Shown: positions 21,975 to 59,297, counted from the stretch's first letter. The stretch is 64,000 nucleotides of DNA from IMGVR_UViG_3300024336_000005:62001-126000, one strand, 5' to 3'. The notes: a model not told the origin generated them from the letters alone. Translations and numbers: made by a program.

Positions 21975-22014
21975 TAAGATACCCTTAAGTGGGCGGAGGG
22001 GTGAAAGGCCCCTA
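21975..22014 (+). repeat. 40-nt direct repeat copy 1 (copy 2 at 22183-22223)
   Basis: TAAGATACCCTTAA(G/C)TGGGCG..GGGGTG(A/G)AAGGCCCC..TA. Confidence 0.85.
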
Positions 22015-22032: not shown

Positions 22033-22163
22033 AGAGGGATGCTCAGGGCAGGTTCATACCTGGAGGTTCGAATCCTCACGGGCTACGGCCCGGAGGGCAT
22101 TAAGTAGTCCTTCCTTTGAATCAGAGAGGAGGGAGCGCCGAAATCAACAGAGCTGATTCCTCT
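22033..22163 (+). ncRNA. circularly permuted tRNA-like RNA (YrlA-type topology)
   Basis: T-arm GAGG-TTCGAAT-CCTC, then closed stem CGGGC-TACG-GCCCG, then D-like GGGC-ATTAAGTA-GTCC; outer stem AGAGG..GCTC/GAGC..CCTCT. Confidence 0.6.
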
Positions 22164-22182
22164 ATTGATGCCTCTAAGAGTT

Positions 22183-22224: not shown

Positions 22225-22328
22225 GGACCATTAAGCTCAAGTGGTTGCAGTCGCTGTTAAGACTCAACCCAAAGGATAGAGCTTCTTCCCCAGAGGAGAG
22301 GTTGCAGGTTCGACACCTGCATGGTTCA
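22225..22328 (+). ncRNA. tRNA-like RNA with hairpin inserted in D-loop and 6-nt anticodon loop
   Basis: acceptor GGACCAT/ATGGTTC, T-arm GCAGG-TTCGACA-CCTGC, insert 22244-22268. Confidence 0.65.
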
Positions 22329-22333
22329 CTAAT

Positions 22334-22408
22334 GGGCCTCAAGCTTTAGCGGTGAAGCAGTTGACTTTTAATCTTCAGAACAGGGTTCGAGTCCCTGGGG
22401 GCCCACCA
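22334..22408 (+). tRNA. trnK: tRNA-Lys(UUU)
   Basis: cloverleaf, loop CTTTTAA, CCA end; two mismatches in anticodon stem. Confidence 0.8.
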
Positions 22409-23868: not shown

Positions 23869-24487
23869 GGGGGTGTCAGGTTTCGACAGGGTATAAATAG
23901 GAAGCGATAGCAGGTCCCGCTAAGAACGGCAGCGGGTTAGAAAGCAAGTTCAAATTGTAAACGGCAACGTAAACAACATGGCGGTGGCTGCCTGATAGCT
24001 TCCCTTCGGGGAATCTATTGGTAGTGCATACCCTCTAGTCTCTGAGTTAGACCTCTTTAAGTAAGGGCTAGAGTACGTGAAATTGAGGAATCGGACAAAG
24101 AAAAGTCCAATGTCGAGTGGATGGAAACTGAAGCTTCGTAGCTGCTTGCAGATACGAGATTGGGAACGTGGTAACACGTACAAGGATAAGCCAAACTAGT
24201 TGCGGAAGACCTCCTTGATGGTTAAGAGCTACCCGCTGACAGTAAACTCATCAAAGGAAATCGTATTACTCTTTTGATGAACCTATAAGTACGAACCTCC
24301 CTGGTTGTTTCTACCATGAGGGGAGTGAGAAAACAGAGCAAGGCGCAGCTTGGGGCCGACAGGAGTTAGCCTCAAGTGGAGTGGCAAGTGCAAATCCTCT
24401 CATTTGTTTTCATCTAAATGAAACTAAACCTGTAGAAGTTGTATTTCGAAAATGTTCTGGACGGGAGTTCAATTCTCCCCACCTCCA
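23869..24487 (+). ncRNA. ssrA: tmRNA (unusually long, 619 nt)
   Basis: 5' GGGGGTGTCAGGTTTCGAC, tag ORF 23957-23995 (A)VNGNVNNMAVAA*, 3' CTAAACCTGTAG...GGACGGGAGTTCAATTCTCCCCACCTCCA. Confidence 0.9.
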
Positions 24488-24808
24488 CATTTCTTCACGC
24501 TGAGTGGCCGTGCTGATTGACGGCGGCTGAAAGCAAACGCAATAAACTACTCGCGCGCTTGGGTTAACCAACCGGAATCAAACAGGATACTGTTCGCGCG
24601 AAATCGGTTAGCCAGCCCTAATAGGTAGTGAGCGTTTGTAGAAAGTGTCTTAGACGGTATGTCAGGGAAGGTACAACCTGGACTCCGGATAGGCGTGAGG
24701 TGGTTCAGGGTTGTAGGTAAGAGAACGGAAAAGGTAATCTGAAAACGCCTTTCTGAAACCCATAAACCTAACAAAGGGGAGCCCGAGTGGTGCAAGCAGC
24801 CCCCAGAG

Positions 24809-28893: not shown

Positions 28894-28985
28894 CAAGAAG
28901 TAAGCGTAAATGGTACTGCTACTGGCCTAAGGTCGAAAGACCTGAATCCGGTGTGTTGGAGGTTCGAATCCTCCCTTCTTGGCCA
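28894..28985 (+). tRNA. tRNA-like (probably Gln CUG-derived) with GAAA hairpin inserted in anticodon loop
   Basis: CAAGAAG/CTTCTTG acceptor, GCCA end, AGGTC-GAAA-GACCT in loop. Confidence 0.65.
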
Positions 28986-33652: not shown

Positions 33653-34711
33653 ATGAGTGATTATCCAGATGGAACCATTATTGTAGGTCTCCAGGATGGA
33701 GACGAAAGCAAGGGAAAGGTGGCGGCGGCTCTTTGTTCGCTACCGCAAGTGACCCATTGTGTTCGCTATAGTGGTGGACAGAATGCAGGCCATGTTTTCT
33801 ACAAGGATGGCCTACAGGTTGTCACTCATATCATTCCCTCTGGGATTGTATATGGGAAGGTCTCGGTGATTGGTCCTGGCTGCGCCTTCTCTGAGAAGGG
33901 CTTCTGGGCTGAGCTAGAAGACATTTGTGATGCACTGGGGGAGACCATGTTGAATCTCTCTCGCTTGATCAAGATCTCCCCTGCTGCTCATATCGTCCAG
34001 GACAAGCACATCGTTTTGGATGAGGCGACAGACAAGATTGGATCTACCAAGAGAGGGATCGCCCCAGTCTATGCCGATAAGGCTATGAGGACGGGCATCC
34101 GAGCCGAGAGCATTCCAAGCCTAAAGCCTTTCTTGTGGGATACGACTAAGCTCAATGACCCAAAGAATGTCATCGTATTTGAAGGGGCTCAAGGCTTTGG
34201 CCTTGATCCTGATGTAGGAGATTATCCCTATATCACCAGCTCCTCCTCTCTCCCTGGTGCGATCAACAATGTTGGTGTGCCCATCTGGGCAATCAATAAG
34301 ATTGTTGGAGTTGCAAAGCTCTATGCGACCTATGTTGGGACCAAGGAATTCGAGCCAGATCTAGAGATTTTCTCAAAGCTTCGTGAGCTCGGAGGGGAGT
34401 ATGGCTCGACCACAGGCCGTCCTCGACAGTGCAACTGGTTGAATCTTGATACTCTCATCACTGCTATTCGAACCTGTGGTTGTACTACGGTCGTCTTCAG
34501 CAAGTGCGACATCATTGAACAGCTTGGCGTTTTCAAGTTGATTGATGGTGGTACAGTTCGAGAGTTCGGGAATATGGCTGGCATGATTGCTCACATTAAG
34601 CGAGAGCTTAAGGAGGAGGCACCAAGTACAAGTCTAATCTTTAGTGGCAGTCAATACACAGTTGAAGATGACTATGGCCATCTTGCTGAAGAGCCGATGG
34701 GAGAGATTTGA
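33653..34711 (+). CDS. purA: adenylosuccinate synthetase (short form)
   Basis: GDESKGK, GGQNAGH, GSTKRGI, FEGAQG, YPYITSS, EYGSTTGRPR. Confidence 0.9.
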   Translation: MSDYPDGTIIVGLQDGDESKGKVAAALCSLPQVTHCVRYSGGQNAGHVFYKDGLQVVTHIIPSGIVYGKVSVIGPGCAFSEKGFWAELEDICDALGETMLNLSRLIKISPAAHIVQDKHIVLDEATDKIGSTKRGIAPVYADKAMRTGIRAESIPSLKPFLWDTTKLNDPKNVIVFEGAQGFGLDPDVGDYPYITSSSSLPGAINNVGVPIWAINKIVGVAKLYATYVGTKEFEPDLEIFSKLRELGGEYGSTTGRPRQCNWLNLDTLITAIRTCGCTTVVFSKCDIIEQLGVFKLIDGGTVREFGNMAGMIAHIKRELKEEAPSTSLIFSGSQYTVEDDYGHLAEEPMGEI

Positions 34712-40772: not shown

Positions 40773-42416
40773 ATGAACTACGGTAAGACTGTTAGCAACG
40801 CTATCAACAATGGTCCAGTTTCTCAGCCTATCATCGGTAGGCCCGAGATGGTAAAGAACAGCACTGAGGGCTTTGTCTTCAACACCACTTCTGAGGCAGC
40901 GCTTGAGCGCTTCCTCATTCTTGGCACTGAAGGCGGCACTTACTATGCCAGCGAGAGCCGAGCTACAGTTGATGCGGCAAAGAATGTCATCGAGATGGCT
41001 GTTGCTGGCAACGTAGATGTAGTCAGTACCATCATCAAGGTCGCTACTGCTCGTCCCTCTCGTGCGCCAAAGATGGAGCCTTCCTTGTTTGCTCTTGCAG
41101 TTTGTACCGCAAAGGGCACCCCCGAGGTAAAAGCTAAGGCGCTCAGCGCGCTGAGCGCGGTTTGCCGTATCCCCACTCATCTGTTTACCTTTCTTCAGGC
41201 CCACAAGGATCTGGGAGGCAAGACCGGTGGGCGCAGCTTCCAGCGAGCCCTACAGAATTGGTATCTTGAGAAGGATCCCTCTAAGCTGGCTTATCAGGTT
41301 GTGAAGTATCAGGGGAGGAATGGCTGGACTCACCGTGATGTTCTTCGGCTTGCCCGCCCTAAGGCTCAGACCCCTGAGCAGAACTCTATTTTGAGTTGGG
41401 CTGTGAATGGTTCGCTGCCTCTGGCAGTAAGTTCTGAAGCGGGTGCTTATCTTGTGGCGGCGAATGAGCTGCTGCGAGGGGAGCCGACGAAGCAGCGTGC
41501 AATCAACTTGATTGAGTCTCATGGGTTCACCCATGAGATGGTTCCGACTAAGCTTCAGAAGGACCCTGATATCTGGGCAGCTTTGCTTCCCCGCATGCCT
41601 ATCAATGCAATGGTTCGCAACCTTGGTCGGATGACTGCCAATGGTCTGATTGTTCCATTCAGTGCCACAACTCAGAGCGTGGTGGAGAAGCTTGAGAATG
41701 TGGATGCCCTTCGCAAGAGCCGCATCCATCCGCTCAACGTTTACGTGGCCTTGCGTACCTATCAGCAGGGCAAGGGCACTCGAGGTTCGTTGACTTGGCG
41801 TCCTGATGCTCAGATCTTGAGCGCACTAGAAGGAGCATTCTACAATGCTTTCGGGAATGTAGAACCGACTGGTAAGCGCTTCATGGTGGGCCTGGATGTA
41901 AGCGGCAGCATGGGTGGATTCTATGGCTACGGCTATAACAGTACTGTGAACCAGACTGGCCTTATGGGGATTCCTGGGTTTACGCCTTATGAGGCAGAAA
42001 CCCTTATGTCCCTTTTGGTTGCAAAGACTGAGAAGCAGACCTTCTTTGGTGGGTTTTCAGACAACTTCACTCCCCTTGCTATCAACTCCCGTGATAACAT
42101 GAGCTCGGCTCTTCAGAAGATCCGATCACTCCGCATGGGTTCCACTAGGATTGCTGCTCCGATGGAGTATGCCACCAAGAACAGGATTCCGGTGGATTGC
42201 TTCCAGATCTACACCGACAATGAAGTGAACATGGGCGGACATCCTTGTCAGACCCTTGAGAAGTATCGTCAGGCTACTGGCATCAATGCGGCCATGGTCG
42301 TATGCGCTATGACCTCTACGAATTTCACTGTGGCCGACCCGAAGGATCCGAAGCAGCTTGATGTTGTTGGATTTGACACGGCAGTGCCAGCTTTGATTCG
42401 ACAGCTTTTGGTGTAA
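40773..42416 (+). CDS. rsr: Ro60/Rsr TROVE-domain RNA-binding protein
   Basis: LERFLILGTEGGTYY, KYQGRNGWTHRDVLRLARP, VRNLGRMT, IHP, vWA MIDAS DVSGSM, YTDNE, DVVGFD. Confidence 0.97.
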   Translation: MNYGKTVSNAINNGPVSQPIIGRPEMVKNSTEGFVFNTTSEAALERFLILGTEGGTYYASESRATVDAAKNVIEMAVAGNVDVVSTIIKVATARPSRAPKMEPSLFALAVCTAKGTPEVKAKALSALSAVCRIPTHLFTFLQAHKDLGGKTGGRSFQRALQNWYLEKDPSKLAYQVVKYQGRNGWTHRDVLRLARPKAQTPEQNSILSWAVNGSLPLAVSSEAGAYLVAANELLRGEPTKQRAINLIESHGFTHEMVPTKLQKDPDIWAALLPRMPINAMVRNLGRMTANGLIVPFSATTQSVVEKLENVDALRKSRIHPLNVYVALRTYQQGKGTRGSLTWRPDAQILSALEGAFYNAFGNVEPTGKRFMVGLDVSGSMGGFYGYGYNSTVNQTGLMGIPGFTPYEAETLMSLLVAKTEKQTFFGGFSDNFTPLAINSRDNMSSALQKIRSLRMGSTRIAAPMEYATKNRIPVDCFQIYTDNEVNMGGHPCQTLEKYRQATGINAAMVVCAMTSTNFTVADPKDPKQLDVVGFDTAVPALIRQLLV

Positions 42417-42432
42417 GAGAAAGGAGACTTTA

Positions 42433-42876
42433 GTGGACATTCGCACTCGCAAAGACATCCCCTCTAATTGGGGTGGCCCATATAAGGCCATCAAAATTAC
42501 CTCTGTTACAGCAACCGTATATAATGGCAAGGCCTCAGACTGCGCAATCACCGCCTCCTGGTTTAGTGATTTTAGCAGTCTGCAGTCTGACCCTTATTTG
42601 CTAATTAACCTAGGGACCGAAGACTGCTATCCATGTCGCATGGATGCCTTCTTCGATGCTTATTCTCCTAATGGCGATGGCAGCTTTTCCAAGCGAGACA
42701 GTGCCCCTGGTAAGGAAGAACGATTTTTAATTCCAGAGGGAATCAGTGTAAATGTTCATACACTTGAAGGAATTAGCGCCATAGTCGGTCCTAGCTATTT
42801 GGTTGTTGGCACTCAAGGTGAGGTGTATCACAATAGTATAGATTGGGCCAATGAGAATCTTCACTTTGTAAGTTAA
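42433..42876 (+). CDS. hypothetical phage protein
   Basis: ORF directly after rsr. Confidence 0.7.
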   Translation: MDIRTRKDIPSNWGGPYKAIKITSVTATVYNGKASDCAITASWFSDFSSLQSDPYLLINLGTEDCYPCRMDAFFDAYSPNGDGSFSKRDSAPGKEERFLIPEGISVNVHTLEGISAIVGPSYLVVGTQGEVYHNSIDWANENLHFVS

Positions 42877-42886
42877 TCATTTTCTG

Positions 42887-43080
42887 AAGAACTGATGTAA
42901 GAAGATTATCACAACTATAACGGCCCTAAGGTAGCGAGAGTCGGGCGACCGATGTTCCGCAATATAGACTCCTAATTCTCCAGTAGAATAAGAGTACGTG
43001 CTCAATGCCGTATCCCACTTTGTGGAGCGGTAATAGCGGCAGGGGTTCAACCCCTATTTCTTCTTCAACTCTTTGTTCTT
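42887..43080 (+). ncRNA. putative Y RNA 1
   Basis: 5' AAGAACTGA pairs with 3' TTGTTCTT; AAGAAGA/TCTTCTT upper stem. Confidence 0.7.
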
Positions 43081-43090
43081 GAGATTCAAA

Positions 43091-43816
43091 ATGAAAATAC
43101 AATATGTAAGTGATGTTCACACTGAATTTCACAAAGATTTGGGAATTCAGTGGGCTAAAACGATTCCTGTTGAAGGGGATGTTTTAGTTCTTGCTGGTGA
43201 TATTGTTATTTTCGAGAACCTCATTCAGGTCTTGACAATCATTTGTAATCGCTTTTCGAAGGTGGTATTTGTTAGCGGCAATCATGAGTATTACCGTTCA
43301 GATCGTAAAACGATTCATAACAAACTGCAAAAGATTGCAAATAAGTTTGACAATTTCCATCATTTAAATAATAATGTAGTTGTCATTGAGGATATACGCT
43401 TCGTCGGTACGACACTTTGGTGGAGCGCCCCTCCTTATGCTTGGCTAGCCATCATGAATGGCTTGAACGACTTTAGTCAGATACTTGGGTATCGCAAATG
43501 GGTCAGCCAGGCAAACATAAAAGCCAAACAGTTTCTACAAGAGAATGTGCGAGAAGGTGATATTGTTATCACCCATCATGCACCAACTTGGGAGGCGCAC
43601 CGACGGCGACAGTTGGGTAATGGAGTAATGCATTTTGCTTATTACAACAACTTAGATGATTTGATCCTTGATAACAAACCAAAATATTGGATTTATGGAC
43701 ACACGCACCATGAAGATCAATTTTCTATAGGGGATACACTTTTAGTGAATTCCCCGCATGATTATTGTCCTTATGAGGGCGGTTGGCCGAAGAAATTCGG
43801 CCTTTTAGATGTCTAG
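43091..43816 (+). CDS. metallophosphoesterase
   Basis: SDVH, LAGDI, GNHE, THHAP, YGHTH; AT-rich. Confidence 0.88.
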   Translation: MKIQYVSDVHTEFHKDLGIQWAKTIPVEGDVLVLAGDIVIFENLIQVLTIICNRFSKVVFVSGNHEYYRSDRKTIHNKLQKIANKFDNFHHLNNNVVVIEDIRFVGTTLWWSAPPYAWLAIMNGLNDFSQILGYRKWVSQANIKAKQFLQENVREGDIVITHHAPTWEAHRRRQLGNGVMHFAYYNNLDDLILDNKPKYWIYGHTHHEDQFSIGDTLLVNSPHDYCPYEGGWPKKFGLLDV

Positions 43817-43923
43817 AAGGGTAGGCTGTTTTAAGCCGAGGGCAGACCCGTTAAGGGTCTCGCGAGCTAAGGAGGCGGAAGGGCCTTAGCTGATAGAGGT
43901 GAATCATTAGAACGACCTCTTAT

Positions 43924-44012
43924 GCCAGATGATGACCTAATTGGATAGGCGACACACTGTGAATGTGTTTGGCGAAAGCCTTTAGCGGGTTCGAATCCCG
44001 TCATTTGGCCCA
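43924..44012 (+). tRNA. trnH: tRNA-His(GUG) with long variable arm
   Basis: G-1:C73, ACACA-CTGTGAA-TGTGT, GGC-GAAA-GCC extra arm, CCA. Confidence 0.88.
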
Positions 44013-44013
44013 T

Positions 44014-44100
44014 ATGAACTGAAGTGATTTCTTTATTACAAACCATTTAAGTTGGGTAACGGCGTTGTGGCACCCATTAGAAGTTACACTATTTGTTCAT
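44014..44100 (+). ncRNA. putative Y RNA 2
   Basis: ATGAACTGA / TTGTTCAT; starts right after tRNA CCA. Confidence 0.7.
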
Positions 44101-44103
44101 TTT

Positions 44104-44174
44104 GCTATTGTTTCTAGGTGAGAGGCCTGTGTGGTATACAGGTCAACAGGGTTCGATTCCCTGCAGTAGCACCA
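44104..44174 (+). tRNA. trnT: tRNA-Thr(GGU), short D arm
   Basis: GCTATTG/CAGTAGC, CCTGT-GTGGTAT-ACAGG, ACCA. Confidence 0.7.
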
Positions 44175-44250
44175 TAAGGGCGTGCACCGGGACTCATACT
44201 CCCCTTTAAAACCCTTAAGGTTAGTGAGATCTGATCACCTCGCTGGCTCT

Positions 44251-44324
44251 GAGACCCTAGTCTAATGGTAGGGCAGCGGATTGCAACCCCGCTAATTCCG
44301 GTTCAAGTCCGGAGGGTTTCTCCA
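44251..44324 (+). tRNA. trnC: tRNA-Cys(GCA)
   Basis: GCGGA-TTGCAAC-CCCGC, U73, CCA. Confidence 0.9.
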
Positions 44325-44379
44325 GATGTTACTAGCATCACCTGAGTCTCGACATGGCGTCAACTAGTCGAGGCTCTAC

Positions 44380-44455
44380 GGCCTTATAGGATAATGGCTA
44401 ATCCACCCGATTCTCATTCGGGATATGGCGGGTTCGACTCCCCCTAAGGTCACCA
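44380..44455 (+). tRNA. trnE: tRNA-Glu(CUC)
   Basis: CCCGA-TTCTCAT-TCGGG, ACCA. Confidence 0.88.
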
Positions 44456-44456
44456 T

Positions 44457-44523
44457 ACGAACTGAAGATATTACGTTACCAAACTGTTAATTTGCTCATG
44501 CGTAATTTCAACCATTTGTTCGT
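44457..44523 (+). ncRNA. putative Y RNA 3 (minimal, carries an Asn-type anticodon loop)
   Basis: ACGAACTGA / TTGTTCGT; CAAA-CTGTTAA-TTTG. Confidence 0.7.
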
Positions 44524-44528
44524 TTTAA

Positions 44529-44602
44529 GGCAGTACACCACGGGCTGGTAGGTGCGGTTCATATTCGTCATCGCAAGGGTTCGAGTCCCTTTGCTGCTAC
44601 CA
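44529..44602 (+). tRNA. degenerate tRNA, probable CAU anticodon
   Basis: GGCAGTA/TGCTGCT acceptor, T-arm, ACCA; weak D and anticodon stems. Confidence 0.5.
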
Positions 44603-44641
44603 CTGACTAGGGTGAGGTCATCAATTTGAAAGACAGGACGA

Positions 44642-44908
44642 ATGCATCCTTTTAGAAAACATCTAGAGATAGAAACTACAAAATCAGGTTCTCTGATTTC
44701 TGTCTATGGACAACCTTCTTGGGTGCAACTTTTCTTTCTTTACATAGATGCTATGGATAAGATGGGACATTCTTTTTACAGAGACTCATCCTTCTACAAA
44801 GAGAGGCTAGAGCTTCTAATCAGAACGGGAAGGTCCAATCGAATTCGTATATGTTGCAGGACGCTTAATAAGCGTTCTAAAAAGCTTCTAAAAGAGATAG
44901 TTGATTAG
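44642..44908 (+). CDS. hypothetical protein
   Basis: ORF. Confidence 0.6.
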   Translation: MHPFRKHLEIETTKSGSLISVYGQPSWVQLFFLYIDAMDKMGHSFYRDSSFYKERLELLIRTGRSNRIRICCRTLNKRSKKLLKEIVD

Positions 44909-44916
44909 AGGAACAA

Positions 44917-45204
44917 ATGGCTTGCAAGATTTGTGGATACAGAAAGAATGTGGCCTTTGGATGCTACGGTCACGAAGAAGAGGCTAAAGTAGAAGAGCCA
45001 AAGGCTGCCGCTTCTTTTGAAATGATGGTTGTAAGCTATCAGTTGGATCGTGGATATGGCCAAGGCTGGGAGAAGCTTTTCACTTGTGCTGACAACAAGA
45101 ATCTTGCTGGTGATTGGCGTGTAACGCCTAATGAATATGGGCATTGGCCGGCTTCGCAGATGCAGAAGCATATGAGAAATGAGGGCCTTCCCCTCTCCGA
45201 TTGA
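44917..45204 (+). CDS. hypothetical protein
   Basis: RBS, ORF. Confidence 0.75.
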   Translation: MACKICGYRKNVAFGCYGHEEEAKVEEPKAAASFEMMVVSYQLDRGYGQGWEKLFTCADNKNLAGDWRVTPNEYGHWPASQMQKHMRNEGLPLSD

Positions 45205-45306
45205 AGATCATAACTGAAGATTCAGTCTTTGTTTGTAAGGCTCCCTACACCGAATGGGAAGACACTGGCAAGATTCCTTTCTGAAGTCTTATGAGAGAGA
45301 GTTAAA

Positions 45307-45693
45307 ATGACTATTGGTTATGTTATCGCCTGGGCTTTATTTTATGTAATGTGTTCAACTCCTTTCCTCTTTGCTGTGGTTTCATCTAGTGGAAAGCAAA
45401 TTGATGCCTTCATTGAGACAAAAGCACATTGGCCAACATGGCTATATGCGTCTTTTTGCTTTTTCATCTGGAGTGGAGTCTTTTTGCTTTCCCCTCTGAT
45501 CGCACTTGTTTTGGGGATTTTCTATTCGACAAAAGGACTAAAGATCTCCTATCGAGAAAGAGAAGTCGAACGGCAGTACATTCTTAAGAAAAGGGAGAGG
45601 ATGACAAAGCTTCAAAAGCGTTCTGGTGGCAGTCTCTCCCTCTCTAAAAACCGACAGCAGGGCATGCTTTCTAAAATTCCTATAGAAAAGTGA
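45307..45693 (+). CDS. membrane protein
   Basis: TM segments. Confidence 0.7.
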   Translation: MTIGYVIAWALFYVMCSTPFLFAVVSSSGKQIDAFIETKAHWPTWLYASFCFFIWSGVFLLSPLIALVLGIFYSTKGLKISYREREVERQYILKKRERMTKLQKRSGGSLSLSKNRQQGMLSKIPIEK

Positions 45694-45810
45694 AAAAGTG
45701 CCCAAAAATATTGTTGGGTTTTAGAAAAAGGATTTTTCAAAAATGACGCTATGGTTCCTTGGGTTTATTACCGGCGCCGGCGCCGGCCTTCTCGGCCATT
45801 CGATTTTAAC

Positions 45811-46122
45811 ATGGAAAAAGTAGCAGACCTTTGGAGGTTGATCCTCCACATTTGGGACTGGCTGAGAGTGAGCCTTAGGGCTCACGCAGAGAAGTTGATC
45901 CTAATTGTTATGTTTGTTCTTCTTGGTCTCATTGCTTGGGACTATTGGAACGATGAGATTGTAGTGAAACACACAGTTGATCTGTGTGCTCAAGAGGGGA
46001 ATCTTGGTTATCCCGACGAATGTGAATGCATCATCATGCAAGCACTTCTGCAAGAGGATGATCATGCAATGAAGAGACTCTTGGGCAAAGCAGGAGAGTG
46101 TAGGACTCTTCTGGGCGAGTAA
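45811..46122 (+). CDS. membrane-anchored protein
   Basis: start corrected to ATG 45811. Confidence 0.6.
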   Translation: MEKVADLWRLILHIWDWLRVSLRAHAEKLILIVMFVLLGLIAWDYWNDEIVVKHTVDLCAQEGNLGYPDECECIIMQALLQEDDHAMKRLLGKAGECRTLLGE

Positions 46123-46125
46123 AAT

Positions 46126-46165
46126 ACGGCAGTGGTGTAATGGTAGCACGAGGGATTCCAAACCT
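46126..46165 (+). pseudogene. 5' half of split tRNA-Trp(CCA)
   Basis: ACGGCAG..AGGGA-TTCCAAA-CC; pairs 7/7 with CTGCCGT at 46849-46855. Confidence 0.85.
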
Positions 46166-46172
46166 GTTGCAT

Positions 46173-46244
46173 ACGCCCTTAGCCAAATGGTAAGGCAGCG
46201 GATTCCAAACCCGTGATTTGTAGGTTCGATCCCTACAGGGCGTG
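46173..46244 (+). tRNA. trnW: tRNA-Trp(CCA), intact copy inside the split gene
   Basis: ACGCCCT/AGGGCGT, GCGGA-TTCCAAA-CCCGT, G73. Confidence 0.93.
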
Positions 46245-46246
46245 CA

Positions 46247-46795
46247 TTATTTAAAGGGGCCATCTTGATTTAGATAGTGATCAACTTGATGACAGGTAGG
46301 ACAAAGAATTTCTAAGTTCTCAATAGAACTATCAAGCTTATCTCTATTTTTATGATGAACCTGTAATACATTTGGATACTCACTCCATCCACATTGTGCA
46401 CAAACAAGTTTAAGTTGCTCAAAAGCAATGGCCCTGTATCCACCTTTTATATATCTACCATTTTTGTAGTTGCTTCCTTTGGAGCCTGATCTAAAAAAGG
46501 TGTTAGCACAGCTTCTGCTACAAACAGTCTTTTCTTTTGGATGTCCTTTAAGAGTCTCAAATTCCTTTAGGCATTGTGGGCATTCTTTTAATACTGTCTG
46601 ATACTTCCTTCTAGGATTTTTCCAATGAGAAATATCTAAAGCCTCTTTTGAAATTCTTGAACGCAGAGCCTGATAAGGCGCATTGTCTATTCCAAGAATT
46701 TCAAATAATTCCTTTCCGCAGGAAGCTGTTTCTACTGCTGCAGCGAAAGATTTAGTCGAATATAACCAGATTCTTGATTTCTTTTTGTGGTTCAT
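46247..46795 (-). CDS. HNH homing endonuclease (antisense, AT-rich)
   Basis: CPQC..CSRSC Zn finger; CAQCG..LQVHHKNRDK..NLEILCPTCH. Confidence 0.9.
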   Translation of the reverse strand: MNHKKKSRIWLYSTKSFAAAVETASCGKELFEILGIDNAPYQALRSRISKEALDISHWKNPRRKYQTVLKECPQCLKEFETLKGHPKEKTVCSRSCANTFFRSGSKGSNYKNGRYIKGGYRAIAFEQLKLVCAQCGWSEYPNVLQVHHKNRDKLDSSIENLEILCPTCHQVDHYLNQDGPFK

Positions 46796-46827
46796 GCATA
46801 CCTCCTAAGGACACAATAACAAAGATT

Positions 46828-46856
46828 CGGTCAGGGTTCAAGTCCTTGCTGCCGTG
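46828..46856 (+). pseudogene. 3' half of split tRNA-Trp
   Basis: CAGGG-TTCAAGT-CCTTG T-arm, CTGCCGT-G acceptor strand. Confidence 0.85.
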
Positions 46857-46878
46857 CAAAATGAAAGAAGAAAACAAC

Positions 46879-47130
46879 ATGCAAGCACATCACTATTTGA
46901 GAGATCACTTCATTCGCAACAATGCCCTCTCTCGTTCTGAAACTCCCTATGGACCTTATAGGGGCTATGTTACTGGTACGTCAGTCTATGATAAGGCTAG
47001 CGGCAATGTGACAGTAGAAGATATTAAGATCCTGAATGGGATTTCCTTTGGGCAAGCAACAGCTGTTAGAATCTGCAAGGAGAATCCTAACCGTATTCTC
47101 ATCAAGTACACTTGTGATTCGACAGACTGA
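46879..47130 (+). CDS. hypothetical protein
   Basis: start corrected. Confidence 0.65.
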   Translation: MQAHHYLRDHFIRNNALSRSETPYGPYRGYVTGTSVYDKASGNVTVEDIKILNGISFGQATAVRICKENPNRILIKYTCDSTD

Positions 47131-47312
47131 TGAATGTTAACGATGTAGTTACAGTAAAGGCAGGTCCTAATAAGACCCCTTATGAATGTCTTGTAAGGTA
47201 TATTTATCCTAATGAAGATGTCCTCTTGGAGCTTCCTAATTTTCTGGGGAACAACCTTAGGTATCAACGTTGGAATAAGTCCTTAAAGAAGTATCGGTCC
47301 GCAAGGACCTAA
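47130..47312 (+). CDS. hypothetical protein
   Basis: TGATG coupling. Confidence 0.65.
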   Translation: MNVNDVVTVKAGPNKTPYECLVRYIYPNEDVLLELPNFLGNNLRYQRWNKSLKKYRSART

Positions 47313-47318
47313 AGATTT

Positions 47319-47493
47319 ATTGAACTGAAGAGATCTAGGTTATCACTATAAAGGCTCGGCCCTCTTAACAGAGGTTTGCAGGTTCGAATCCTGTCGATCC
47401 GAAAGGATCGTGGCGAAATGGTAAACGCACCGAATATAAGTACCGGGGACCTTGAAAGAGGAATCCAATCTCCTAACTCGTCCCTTGTTCAAT
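47319..47493 (+). ncRNA. putative Y RNA 4, YrlA-type with permuted tRNA domain
   Basis: ATTGAACTGA/TTGTTCAAT; T-arm GCAGG-TTCGAAT-CCTGT, CGATCC-GAAA-GGATCG, D-arm GCG-AAATGGTAAA-CGC. Confidence 0.85.
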
Positions 47494-47498
47494 GATTT

Positions 47499-47583
47499 GG
47501 CTCTCAGGTTCCACGGTGGGACAACCGGCTGTAAACCGGTCGCGTTAAATCGCTACTAGGTTCGATTCCTAGGGGAGCCACCA
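47499..47583 (+). tRNA. trnY: tRNA-Tyr(GUA)
   Basis: ACCGG-CTGTAAA-CCGGT, variable arm, ACCA; extended D stem. Confidence 0.88.
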
Positions 47584-47584
47584 C

Positions 47585-47737
47585 GAAAGTCTGGTAGCAG
47601 TTCAGGATGTTTCCCTTAAGGCTCCTGGAGTGGGTGCAACTCCTATACTTTCATTAGAGGAGCTTATAGCCTGCAGGCTTGTAAGAGCGACAGTGTGGCC
47701 ACACTGTGATAGGGTTTGAGTCCCTGTGCCTCTGCCA
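47585..47737 (+). other. two degenerate tRNA-like elements (about 47585-47651 and 47656-47737)
   Basis: acceptor-like ends and T-like arms (GTGGG-TGCAACT-CCTAT; TAGGG-TTTGAGT-CCCTG, GCCA) but no canonical anticodon arm. Confidence 0.4.
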
Positions 47738-47740
47738 CAA

Positions 47741-47774
47741 TCGGAAGTAGTCTAATTGGCAAAACAGGGGCCTC
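47741..47774 (+). pseudogene. 5' half of a split tRNA (identity uncertain, possibly Gln)
   Basis: TCGGAAG-TA-GTCTAATTGGC; pairs 7/7 with CTTCCGA at 48652-48658. Confidence 0.8.
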
Positions 47775-47777
47775 GTG

Positions 47778-48488
47778 CTACTTGAGCCATTTGCGAATAG
47801 CATTATCAGTAACTCCGTAATGTCTTCCTGTTTTAGAATATCCCCATAGCTTTATTTGATCCAATAGAACTTCCTTGGAGGGTCTATTCAAAACCTTACG
47901 TCTTGAGTGGTCTGCCTGCCTTGCACAAGATCTACACCTAGCGGCTGTTGCTGAAATTTTTTCTTGACAGTCTTGACAATGATTTTGCTTCTTTTTGTGC
48001 GAAACATTTCGTCCAGCAAAGGTGGCCGTCTGGCTATTGCAATTAGGACAAAGAAAGCGCAAATTCTCTAATCTATGATCATTATTAATTCCATTGATGT
48101 GATCAAGAATTAATACAAGTAATTCTTCATTCCAAATATTGTTTTGCTTGCACAAGAGGCATTCATAAGGAATTACGCCCTCTTTTAGGATGCGTTGCTT
48201 AAGAGTGCCACGGCTGTAGGATGAATTCTTAATCATGTATTCCTCAAGGGGCTTGCCTCTTGAGGATGAAACCAGCCTTCTTGCTTCATTGTTTGTAAGA
48301 TCAATCCTAATTAATTCTTCTTGTAGGCAATATTTAATTGCTAATTCCTTTAGGATTCTGTATGTAGACCCACAGCGATTGGCAATGTTTAGGATCTCTA
48401 AAGCCTGGGCTCTCGATTCTGCTTGTTGTATTGCAGAAATAAATTCTATTTTGGGGACTTTATACAGGGGATGACTTTTCTTTCTCAT
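47778..48488 (-). CDS. HNH homing endonuclease (antisense, AT-rich)
   Basis: LILDHINGINNDHRLENLRFLCPNCNSQ; start set at MRKKSH with AGGAG RBS. Confidence 0.9.
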   Translation of the reverse strand: MRKKSHPLYKVPKIEFISAIQQAESRAQALEILNIANRCGSTYRILKELAIKYCLQEELIRIDLTNNEARRLVSSSRGKPLEEYMIKNSSYSRGTLKQRILKEGVIPYECLLCKQNNIWNEELLVLILDHINGINNDHRLENLRFLCPNCNSQTATFAGRNVSHKKKQNHCQDCQEKISATAARCRSCARQADHSRRKVLNRPSKEVLLDQIKLWGYSKTGRHYGVTDNAIRKWLK

Positions 48489-49131: not shown

Positions 49132-49132
49132 T

Positions 49133-49250
49133 TTGAACTGAAGGATATTGGTTATCTTTTCTGAACAAAAACGTGCTGGGTTCGATTCCCAGGGGTTCCA
49201 TAAGGGGCCCGCAGGCGCCTAGTAAACTTCCGATTCCACCCCTTGTTCAA
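49133..49250 (+). ncRNA. putative Y RNA 5, YrlA-type
   Basis: TTGAACTGA/TTGTTCAA; T-arm CTGGG-TTCGATT-CCCAG then closed stem GGGTTCC-ATAA-GGGGCCC. Confidence 0.8.
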
Positions 49251-49451
49251 TTCATTCTAAAAGTTCCTATACAAATCTCAAAAAAGTCAGAAAAATATTT
49301 TGGGCTTTTGAAAAGATCTTTTCACCGTTCGAAAGGTGAAAAGGAACGCCTTAATCTAGCTACAACGAGTGGTTGTTTCAGTTCATCCCATCTCAATAGT
49401 TAGTTGCTGTCTCTAAATCAACTGAATAAAAGCAGCAAAGATTAAGGTCAT

Positions 49452-50780: not shown

Positions 50781-50868
50781 CTAGCGAGCGGGCGGTGGAC
50801 GCCCAACCGTGCTGTACAGCGGTGGTGCTTTGATGCACAACTGGGTTCGATTCCTAGGCGCTAGACCA
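50781..50868 (+). tRNA. Tyr-like class II tRNA with 8-nt anticodon loop
   Basis: ACCGT-GCTGTACA-GCGGT, GTGC..GCAC arm, 5-bp D stem, ACCA. Confidence 0.65.
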
Positions 50869-52038: not shown

Positions 52039-52121
52039 GTGCCCTTTGGCGGAATGGTAGACGCACGTAATGGTCCCCTCCGGCTTAGAGGGGTGCAGGT
52101 TCGACTCCTGTAAGGGTGCCA
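52039..52121 (+). ncRNA. tRNA-like RNA lacking a normal anticodon arm
   Basis: acceptor, Leu-type D arm and T arm present; only CGTAATGGT then CCCCTC-CGGCTTA-GAGGGG. Confidence 0.6.
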
Positions 52122-52638: not shown

Positions 52639-52705
52639 AGCTGAGAGGAAAGCCCCATATTCTAGGAAGCCTTGACAGTTCGGAGAGACGAACGCTTTAT
52701 CTTAT

Positions 52706-53039
52706 CCAGGAGGTGGGCTTAGAAGCAGCCATCCTTTAAAGAGTGGGCATAGATGAAGCTTAACCGATTGATCTTATCTAATCATGACACGGATAGGAGA
52801 AGCTTAAGTTAGCACCTCTCAATAAATTCGAATTGGACCCAGGTTGGCTTCCTGGTTGGCCTTTACGAGAGAGTCTTGTAAGAAAGCGGGAAGAGACTTA
52901 GTCAGTCTTATAAAGAGAGCGAAACCGAACGCAACTCTTTGTTCTATTTTAGAACTGGTGTGAATCCTATGACGGGATGTATTTGGTTAACAAACGAGAG
53001 AATTGACTCTGCCCTCCTTTTAGCGTAATAGCACACTGG
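52706..53039 (+). ncRNA. 23S rRNA H43-H44 (uL11-binding GTPase centre) mimic with 278-nt insertion
   Basis: CCAGGAGGTGGGCTTAGAAGCAGCCATCCTTTAAAGAGT [insert 52745-53022] GCGTAATAGCACACTGG; no other rRNA sequence nearby. Confidence 0.85.
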
Positions 53040-56058: not shown

Positions 56059-56195
56059 AAAGAACTGACGATTTTAGATTATCATTATACCAAACCAATA
56101 AAGAGAGGGTTCGACTCCCCAGGGATGGTGAAGTGGTTTCACACATAGGCTCAAATCCTATGGAATTCCTTATTCTAAATCAATTTTTGTTCTTT
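56059..56195 (+). ncRNA. putative Y RNA 6 with T-arm, D-like arm and anticodon stem-loop
   Basis: AAAGAACTGA/TTGTTCTTT; GAGGG-TTCGACT-CCCC; ATAGG-CTCAAAT-CCTAT. Confidence 0.75.
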
Positions 56196-56197
56196 AT

Positions 56198-56274
56198 GCC
56201 CATGTCGACTAGTGGCCTAAGTCGCTTGTTTTTCACACAAGTCATCGTCGGTTCGAATCCGTCCATGGGTACCA
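56198..56274 (+). tRNA. trnE: tRNA-Glu(UUC)
   Basis: CTTGT-TTTTCAC-ACAAG, ACCA. Confidence 0.9.
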
Positions 56275-59164: not shown

Positions 59165-59297
59165 TCTGGTGTCGCTTAATGGTAGAGCAGGCGGCTGTGG
59201 TTTATTGCAAGGGCATTACAAGGGTCTTAACCTTGGTAGGCCTCATAACCGCCCGGGGGAAACTCCATTGTAGGTTCGACTCCTACCACCAGAGCCA
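59165..59297 (+). tRNA. interrupted tRNA (Asn-like) with 47-nt insert in anticodon loop and long variable arm
   Basis: TCTGGTG/CACCAGA, G73, CCA; GGCGG-CTGT[59199-59245]TAA-CCGCC. Confidence 0.75.

Follow-up and report, generated by a model that had tools for sequence, protein, structure and literature searches.

The 64,000 nt stretch analysed here (the window: bases 62001-126000 of the complete, 204,008-bp IMG/VR virus record IMGVR_UViG_3300024336_000005) comes from an uncultured marine jumbo phage and harbours, at 47319-47493 on its + strand, an RNA gene designated element C that, to judge from its sequence, is a genuine YrlA-type Y RNA. The best overall explanation, and in our estimation a likely one, is a YrlA-type gene whose terminal helix would dock on the Ro60 protein of the phage itself, and whose middle would form a permuted, closed tRNA mimic. 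Phage YrlAs have already been reported, in 2014; what is new here is a UGAA/bulged-U stem present in six paralogous RNAs, an enlarged architecture, and tight embedding among tRNA genes. Element C is overlapped by neither an open reading frame (ORF) of at least 50 aa nor a tRNA call (ARAGORN), and is made up as follows.

47319-47493 (+): element C, YrlA-type Y RNA, 175 nt (12-phage model, collinear Rfam YrlA match, homologues in the phage contigs L005 and L319)
47319-47325 with 47487-47493 (+): terminal helix of 7 bp, AUUGAAC with GUUCAAU (sequence, script check)
47330-47332 with 47477-47479 (+): middle stem, GAG with CUC (script check)
47336-47339 with 47472-47475 (+): upper stem, UAGG with CCUA (script check)
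47340-47343 (+): YUAY motif UUAU, within GGUUAUC (read from the sequence)
47356-47359 with 47430-47433 (+): anticodon-stem analogue, UCGG with CCGA, right after the D arm, as in Salmonella YrlA (script check)
47361-47374 (+): V (variable-arm) hairpin CCUCU-UAAC-AGAGG (fold, script check)
47378-47382, 47383-47389 and 47390-47394 (+): T arm GCAGG-UUCGAAU-CCUGU (sequence, Rfam alignment)
47395-47400, 47401-47404 and 47405-47410 (+): acceptor-like hairpin (AS) of 6 bp, GAAA-closed, CGAUCC-GAAA-GGAUCG (sequence)
47411 and 47412 (+): AS-D linker U8/G9, U47411 and G47412 (sequence)
47413-47416, loop, 47425-47428 (+): D arm GCG(A)-AAUGGUAA-(A)CGC, followed by A26 at 47429 (sequence)
47434-47471 (+): 3′ insertion with the hairpin CCUU-GAAA-GAGG at 47450-47461, absent from other phage YrlAs (14-sequence alignment, constrained fold)

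The arms that a first-pass annotation had picked out, namely a T arm with TTCGAAT, an acceptor stem closed by GAAA and a D arm with TGG, are present at 47378-47394 (pairings script-checked), 47395-47410 (a hairpin of 6 bp) and 47413-47428, respectively, and the GAACTGA/TTGTTC stem on which it had mounted them is borne out to the base. Beyond the seven terminal pairs, U47326 is bulged and followed by the pairs G47327-U47486 and A47328-U47485, the helix reading GAAC-U-GA / UU-GUUC with an asymmetric internal loop beyond. The arms occur in the permuted order T, AS, D, and the T loop conforms to the tRNA consensus UUCRANY with a loop-closing G-C pair. Nucleotides on the list of tertiary contacts for the YrlA tRNA mimic (PMC4201824; 10.1101/312249) can be read off as U47411, A47417, A47418 with U47377, G47420/G47421 and U47383-A47387, the contacts in tRNA numbering being U8, A14, the A15:U48 Levitt pair, G18/G19, U54-A58 and G53-C61, all of them positions that a tRNA-like L-shape would call for. 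Two further features are published marks of YrlAs (PMC4201824): a YUAY motif where the V region begins, and a V stem-loop ahead of the T arm.

With regard to folding energy, element C is not singled out (z −0.54): its fold with the proposed pairs enforced reaches −38.6 kcal/mol, and the unconstrained minimum free energy (MFE) fold, at −44.3 kcal/mol, keeps the terminal and upper stems together with the V and AS hairpins, with the T and D arms lost and the cloverleaf not recovered. The loss of T and D arms from MFE folds and an unremarkable z-score are usual for tRNA-like RNAs. A genuine or permuted tRNA gene was considered and ruled out, as neither ARAGORN nor the Rfam tRNA model calls a tRNA here, the latter matching the T arm alone (12.6 bits). 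Element C has no 7-nt anticodon loop (its V loop has 4 nt), and its AS is a GAAA-closed hairpin of 6 bp rather than a 7-bp acceptor stem.

Membership of the YrlA family is carried by a covariance model (R1) built from 12 YrlA-type RNAs of other phages, mycobacteriophage Bxz1 among them, with this phage left out together with its closest relative. The alignment behind the model was given the lower stem and the V, T, AS and D helices. R1 recovers exactly 47319-47493, over its full length (positions 1-132), with 42.7 bits and an E-value of 1.8e-9 in the window or 5.7e-9 in the whole 204-kb genome, which passes the family-model cut-off of Chen et al. (E < 5e-5; PMC4201824). Significant full-length R1 matches in the genome are limited to element C and one paralogue, D, besides a look-alike at a tRNA junction (22263-22391). 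The Rfam YrlA model (RF02553) aligns collinearly with the T-AS-D of element C (model positions 29-81), and nothing else in the genome matches it better than element C (E 0.005 per genome). The YrlA-type architecture proposed in the first-pass annotation thus stands on the collinear Rfam alignment, the full-length R1 match, the YUAY motif, the V stem-loop and the tertiary-contact nucleotides.

The fold is likewise backed by covariation. When run on a 14-sequence MAFFT alignment with element C among its members, RNAalifold returns the lower stem together with T, AS and D, and 20 of its 24 pairs are changed on both sides. When a 26-pair structure is laid over the 14 sequences, 97.2 % of cells are paired as against 38-44 % with slid partners, and the covariation score is 0.76 as against approximately 0.1, a value as high occurring in none of 500 shuffles; 20 of the 26 pairs have changed on both sides, including all 8 pairs of the AS. 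Covariation of the T stem is seen in the family alignment, and a model-guided alignment of 45 sequences gives similar covariation with support for the V hairpin as well.

Homologues of element C are found at L005:14841-14995 and L319:10970-11126, and these keep the T, AS, D, V and upper stems, and in L319 also the anticodon-stem analogue, by compensatory change. For element C, L005 and L319, respectively, the T stem reads GCAGG/CCUGU, AGAGG/CCUCU and AUAGG/CCUAU, the AS reads CGAUCC/GGAUCG, GCCCGAC/GUCGGGC and UAUGAC/GUCAUA (the last UUCG-closed), and the D stem reads GCG/CGC, GUUC/GAAC and GUG/CAC. The upper stem, UAGG/CCUA in element C, is changed on both sides in the L319 homologue (UUGG/CCAA) and reads UUGG/CCGA in paralogue D; the V hairpin is CCUCU/AGAGG in element C and CCCCU/AGGGG in the L319 homologue, for which the anticodon-stem analogue is CGCU/GGCG in place of UCGG/CCGA. 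In the L005 homologue this last stem is drawn by eye only, as CAUACG/CGUaAUG with one bulge, and came out unpaired in a script check on a shorter segment; the hairpin at the site of the 3′ insertion also differs (GCUG-UUAAAU-CAGC).

The presumptive protein partner is encoded on the same strand.

40773-42416 (+): rsr, Ro60 orthologue, 547 aa (Pfam TROVE, E 2e-39; vWA_Ro60, E 9e-47)

The rsr product aligns over residues 24-544 with solved Ro60/Rsr structures (PDB 9nen, 1yvp and 2nvo; E 1e-96 to 1e-108), and by these sequence matches the gene is an intact, full-length Ro60 orthologue. It had been placed about 5 kb from element C, and the measured distance from its end is 4.9 kb, with stem-sharing paralogues at 0.47, 1.6 and 2.0 kb. 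The protein is 39 % identical to its closest cultured-phage counterpart, 53 % to the Ro60 of L005 and 46 % to that of L319. A search of IMG/VR with the single window protein returned no loci, and a later profile search gave at least 518 Ro60 loci. The motif alignment shows that residues 148-154 read GGKTGGR, where nearly all other Ro60s have G-W-G-R.

The stem GAAC-U-GA / UU-GUUC is common to six RNAs of the window, all on the + strand: element C and the paralogues F, A, B, D and E, listed here with the tRNA gene that follows element C.

42887-43080 (+): paralogue F, a pattern match 470 nt after rsr, with stem AAGAAC-U-GA / UU-GUUCUU and a AGAUUAUC motif, without T-AS-D
44014-44100 (+): paralogue A, a short stem-bulge-stem RNA between tRNA-His (end 44012) and tRNA-Thr (start 44104)
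44457-44523 (+): paralogue B, short, between tRNA-Glu (end 44455) and tRNA-Met (start 44529)
47499-47583 (+): tRNA-Tyr, 5 nt downstream of element C (ARAGORN)
49132-49251 (+): paralogue D, R1 60 bits, E 4e-14, starting 1 nt after tRNA-Lys
~56060-56195 (+): paralogue E, with stem AAGAAC-U-GA / UU-GUUCUU, the AGAUUAUC motif and T arm GGGG-UUCGACU-CCCC, R1 only 13.6 bits

Paralogue F is intergenic if the metallophosphoesterase gene begins at the ATG at 43091. Paralogues A and B belong with the YrlB kind of short RNA, built as stem-bulge-stem, and R1 aligns with B over its full length, the tRNA-like domain being deleted (17.1 bits). Paralogue D, which has a homologue at L005:13756-13877, carries the T arm CUGGG-UUCGAUU-CCCAG and the AS GGGUUCC-AUAA-GGGGCCC without a proper D arm. 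Element C alone among the six possesses the complete T-AS-D set and so links the shared stem to the known tRNA-mimic domain, which is why the first-pass annotation was right to treat it as the best anchor for the family and as the point where that domain joins the variant helix. In five of the six, a tRNA gene stands only 0-5 nt away: A and B have one on each side, D has one before its 5′ end, and C and E each have one after the 3′ end (E ending approximately 3 nt before the tRNA-Glu at 56198). The L005 homologues are likewise wedged between tRNAs.

In pattern searches, GAACTGAAG..TTGTTCR matched four times on the forward strand, never on the reverse and never in controls, and the looser GAACTGA..TTGTTC seven times forward and never in reverse, with one and two matches in the controls. 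Together with the R1 match, these counts place element C beyond chance. An 18-base pattern specific to element C found, in IMG/VR and metagenomes, the phage itself (L263) plus chance matches only; 16-base patterns for the stem in IMG/VR gave mostly chance matches and a few true Y RNA loci (L057, L127, L194 and others).

The terminal helix of these RNAs departs from the published bacterial Ro-binding motif, GNCGAAN0-1G (PMC4201824), referred to as the CGAA motif in a study of the Thermus phage phiLo (PMC12135203). Most of the phage Y RNAs collected read GAGC-C-GAAG or GGGC-C-GA, whereas all six paralogues carry the GAAC-U-GA variant. The pair that holds the G-to-A change (column 6 of the lower-helix alignment) is GC in 18, GU in 14 and AU in 3 of 45 phage Y RNAs. 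An engineered C-to-U change in phiLo raised the dissociation constant from 16.6 to 49 nM, approximately threefold (PMC12135203), and this small cost makes the bulged U seen here compatible with Ro60 binding. Whole sets of bulged-U Y RNAs also stand beside rsr elsewhere, in nine or more further phage contigs.

Both the bulge and the Ro60 motif vary among phages. Loci were first collected on the expectation that Trp-less Ro60s would go with U-type Y RNAs: L315, L316, L317, L318 and L319 all carry U-type Y RNAs (approximately ten in L315), and L320, whose Ro60 has Phe at the motif, carries C-type RNAs. A strict rule pairing Trp with a bulged C, and absence of Trp with a bulged U, held for 18 of 18 in a first set and was abandoned once an unbiased sample of 80 IMG/VR Ro60 loci yielded exceptions: L354 (Trp, four U-type RNAs), L395 and L394 (non-aromatic, C-type) and L324 (mixed). 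As raw counts, non-aromatic Ro60s had 10 U against 2 C, and aromatic ones 1 U against 42 C. On a tree of 55 Ro60s, these reduce to 5-7 independent contrasts, in which the RNA follows in 3-4, goes the opposite way in none and is unchanged in 1-2, and the association of Trp and bulge is not significant on this tree (sign test, p 0.125-0.25). One well-supported clade unites the window Ro60 with L319, L006 and L317, all Trp-less and U-type, with the sister pair L005 and L007 having Trp and C-type RNAs. That bulged-U Y RNAs tend to go with Trp-less Ro60s, exceptions aside, is a lead from sequence comparison rather than a result. A bolder proposal, which we consider rather doubtful, is that the bulged-U helix is half of a matched protein-RNA pair with Trp-less Ro60s and not a product of drift, and that this lineage makes six Ro60 tethers with different effector modules by RNase P/RNase Z excision from the tRNA array. 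Were it true, this would single out the Trp of GWGR as the residue by which canonical Ro60s recognise the bulged C of their Y RNAs.

Several points weigh against element C as a Ro60-binding YrlA. Its 5′ motif, ACUGAAG, departs from GNCGAAN0-1G at two positions, a G-to-A change that is offset by U on the 3′ strand and the bulged C-to-U change. The D stem has three Watson-Crick pairs plus an A-A, the AS-D linker is UG where the conserved form is UA, and the distance of 4.9 kb to rsr lies outside the 4-kb limit that Chen et al. set for Y RNAs of their high-confidence set (PMC4201824). The covariation of the lower stem is partly circular, candidates having been chosen for a paired terminal stem, although T, AS and D were not so chosen. 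The Rfam YrlA score, which the first-pass annotation had named as a check, gives a divided answer, for element C is the best and a collinear match in its genome, yet scores 21.1 bits and thus falls formally below the gathering threshold of 69. Calibration led to this threshold being dropped as an uninformative test of membership: the element 160 nt upstream of the Bxz1 Ro gene scores 32.5 bits and clear YrlAs of other phage contigs 33-41 bits (reference phage YrlAs 32.5-40.7), and because the reference phage YrlAs fail too, the cut-off does not discriminate in the case of element C. On the RNA side, the deepest seawater metatranscriptome contig on 43.8-49.5 kb covers 47154-47498 and stops exactly at the 5′ end of tRNA-Tyr, and none of the RNA contigs over this stretch covers mature tRNAs or paralogues A, B or D, which fits transcription through element C and an RNase P cut at the tRNA; however, the contig, from a kind of library that can contain DNA, runs into the upstream ORF and shows no discrete 5′ end.

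That same contig joins element C to the upstream ORF (47130-47312) and ends at tRNA-Tyr, and the paralogues also abut tRNAs, as would be expected if element C were a tRNA-like element that serves to process or stabilise the mRNA upstream of it, providing RNase P/RNase Z punctuation or 3′ protection independently of Ro60. Such a role appears improbable, as it leaves unexplained the Ro-type bulged helix in six RNAs, the YUAY motif and the match with the rsr-flanking YrlAs of dozens of other phages, and a closed acceptor stem of 6 bp is a poor substrate for RNase P (PMC4201824). The location in a tRNA array could also be the mark of a decayed, functionless tRNA-tRNA junction, in which the T arm of one dead tRNA has been left beside the D arm of the next. 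YrlA models do cross-match tRNA dimers: R1 positions 25-105 match several tRNA junctions at 30-48 bits, 22263-22391 reaches 31.7 bits by running into tRNA-Lys, and Chen et al. warn of tandem-tRNA false positives (PMC4201824). Nevertheless, a dead junction is very improbable, given that the R1 match to element C is full length and includes the terminal Y stem that tRNA dimers lack, that no tRNA overlaps it, that a tetraloop closes its 6-bp acceptor analogue into a hairpin, that the whole element with its stem, YUAY and upper stems is kept with compensatory changes in L005 and L319, and that the same stem occurs in five other RNAs of the genome.

It is also conceivable, if unlikely, that element C has the shape of a Y RNA and no longer binds Ro60, or binds another protein, with the mimic acting alone, for example as a decoy for host enzymes that target tRNAs. 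The off-consensus UGAA motif with its bulged U, the GGKTGGR in place of GWGR in Ro60, and the finding that lower-stem mutations abolish Ro60 binding in vertebrates (PMC4726728) would all be in keeping with lost binding. Against this, retention of one variant by six paralogues, and the bulged-U sets flanking rsr in at least nine other phage contigs, argue for a working pair; the affinity cost in phiLo was only about threefold (PMC12135203); and the helix has the geometry of the vertebrate Ro60 site, in which 7 bp are followed by a single bulged pyrimidine and the strand opposite forms a loop (PMC4726728).

For element C as a Ro60-bound tRNA mimic, we infer a course of events that draws on Chen et al. 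(2013, 2014), Wang et al. (2018) and the phiLo study. The RNA would probably be transcribed within the tRNA array and released by tRNA-processing enzymes, the RNase P cut at the 5′ end of tRNA-Tyr making its 3′ end, and with its closed AS of 6 bp the mimic itself should be spared by RNase P, as is that of Salmonella YrlA. The terminal bulged helix would then dock on the phage-encoded Ro60 ring, at its outer face, whilst the middle would fold into a circularly permuted, closed tRNA mimic composed of the anticodon-stem analogue, V, T, the GAAA-capped AS and D. The tRNA-like elbow of this mimic could serve as the contact for a second factor, for which host PNPase and a tRNA-binding or RNA-decay enzyme are the candidates; in phiLo, the phage Ro60 has been shown to bind phage Y-like RNAs via CGAA and to form a complex with host PNPase (PMC12135203). 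By analogy with bacterial and phage Ro60 ribonucleoproteins, element C may tether Ro60 to the host enzyme or gate the Ro60 cavity, and the resulting particle might steer the degradation or repair of structured RNAs during infection.

Amongst known systems, YrlA of Salmonella Typhimurium (RF02553; tRNA-like domain PDB 6CU1) has the same terminal Ro stem, the same order of T, closed 6-bp AS and D, an anticodon-stem analogue assembled from the 5′ and 3′ halves, and the same tertiary-contact nucleotides (10.1101/312249). Element C differs in its 175 nt as against approximately 114 model positions, in its V hairpin and extra 3′ hairpin, in having ACUGAAG rather than GNCGAAG and a UG rather than a UA linker, and in lying in a phage tRNA array rather than in an rsr-yrlBA-rtcBA operon. 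The phage YrlAs found by Ro genes (ET08, Chen et al. 2014; Bxz1, L302:3660-3800; many IMG/VR contigs) share GGUUAYC, V, T, AS and D, come as several Y RNAs per phage and are detected by R1. Whilst those mostly have GAGC-C-GAAG or GGGC-C-GA and lie within approximately 1 kb of rsr, element C has GAAC-U-GAAG, lies 4.9 kb off among tRNAs, adds the anticodon-stem analogue and the 3′ insertion, and scores 42.7 bits with R1 as against their 55-123. Yrl1 and Yrl2 of phiLo, which accompany phiRo60 (PMC12135203), are alike as stem-bulge-stem RNAs of a phage with its own Ro60, and are the precedent for binding and for the PNPase complex; they are short, carry CGAA, lack a tRNA-like domain, and had the U form engineered into them, whereas in element C it is natural.

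The vertebrate Y RNAs (hY1, hY3, hY4 and hY5; Xenopus Y3) resemble element C in the 7-bp lower stem, the bulged pyrimidine followed by G-U and A-U pairs, and the loop on the opposite strand (PMC4726728). They differ in that their bulge is C, a tRNA-like domain is lacking, and they are RNA polymerase III products that end in a La-binding U tail. The human sequence GGUC-C-GAAG...GUUAUC resembles the GAAC-U-GAAG...GGUUAUC of element C. Circularly permuted tRNA genes (the red alga Cyanidioschyzon and others) likewise have T before D and an acceptor stem closed by a loop; however, they yield real tRNAs with an anticodon loop and CCA, whereas element C has a 6-bp acceptor, a Ro-type helix and no anticodon loop.

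A number of further observations concern YrlA-like and tRNA-like elements, in this genome and in related phages. In typical phage YrlAs (L186, L194, L218, L230, L005, L057, L127 and Bxz1; columns 26-38 of the phage YrlA alignment), the V hairpin has a 7-nt, anticodon-like loop Y-U-N-N-N-A-A, as against only 4 nt in element C. These loops, together with the R1 cross-matches to tRNA junctions, fit the model of a dimeric-tRNA origin for YrlA, which is cited in 10.1101/312249. The AS of L005:13756-13877 (the paralogue D homologue) and of L057:1458-1588 has a loop of ACCA or ACCACC after a stem of 6-7 bp, from which cleavage by RNase P would produce a CCA end like that of a tRNA; an RNase P-cut end of this sort has been reported for YrlA of M. 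smegmatis (PMC4201824). In some phage contigs (L315:3056-7826, L395:3682-5973 and L324:5398-5906), approximately 10-12 Y RNA genes stand in tandem upstream of rsr, far above the two to four described in bacteria.

Within the window, a structured element of approximately 135 nt at 22042-22178, closed by UUAGAGG/CCUCUAA, has the T-AS-D order of YrlA without the GAACUGA stem, and comprises the T arm GGAGG-UUCGAAU-CCUCA, the hairpin CGGGC-UACG-GCCCG and the D-like arm GGGC-AUUAAGUA-GUCC (Rfam YrlA 16 bits); it may be another kind of tRNA mimic. At 22263-22333 a tRNA-like 3′ half (T arm GCAGG-UUCGACA-CCUGC) abuts tRNA-Lys, and the R1 match at 22263-22391 was rejected as a YrlA, being a tandem-tRNA false positive that runs into this gene. 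Copies of a unit of approximately 40 nt, AGAUACCCUUAA..GGGCG..GGCCCC, lie at 21988 and 22183.

As for the genome at large, the window has a G+C content of 50.6 % and carries 26 tRNA genes (ARAGORN), a few more found by Rfam only, and a tmRNA, all on the + strand. The tmRNA (23869-24490, 622 nt, with large insertions) scores 83.5 bits with Rfam and received no ARAGORN call, as is the case for a 130-nt Rfam tRNA match that possibly contains an intron (59165-59294) and for two weak ones (28894-28982 and 52040-52119); at 50781-50868, the anticodon of the tRNA called by ARAGORN has four bases (tgta). Between genes of the tRNA array, 52694-52759 (+) gives a short match to positions 1163-1246 of the archaeal large-subunit rRNA model (26.7 bits, E 2.6e-4). 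Proteins encoded in the window include an ATP-dependent RNA ligase, two metallophosphoesterases, a protein with an HD domain and another resembling adenylosuccinate synthetase. The last of these (33653-34711), with counterparts in the related phages at L005:2196-4729 and L319:2263-3273, matches phrog_1211, '2-aminooxy adenylosuccinate synthetase' (PurZ-like), and the genome may contain a modified purine. In the window (40773-43816), as in L005, L006 and L317, the next gene after rsr encodes a calcineurin-like metallophosphoesterase, a conserved pairing that suggests joint work in RNA end-healing. The RNA ligase, phosphoesterases, tmRNA and tRNAs nearby fit the RNA-repair context put forward for the Ro60 of jumbo phages (PMC7824862). 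A megablast search with 40773-48000 found no DNA-level relatives among 50,697 cultured phage records; DNA of the phage is also present in seawater metagenomes (metagenome search).

Y RNAs are obligate partners of Ro60 from bacteria to humans, and few have been characterised beyond a handful of species. Element C shows that complete YrlA-type tRNA mimics occur in marine jumbo phages, a long way from the actinophages in which such RNAs were known, and calibration of the Rfam score indicates that phage YrlAs in general escape the curated Rfam model. The packing of Y RNAs tightly between tRNA genes bears on the proposal that YrlAs originated from dimeric tRNA transcripts, and also on how phages assemble modules for RNA repair or RNA decay. 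The supposedly conserved CGAA/bulged-C element is seen to have a natural UGAA/bulged-U form, and as bulged-U Y RNAs often occur with a changed Ro60 motif, these phages may offer an experimental handle on how Ro60 reads its RNAs.

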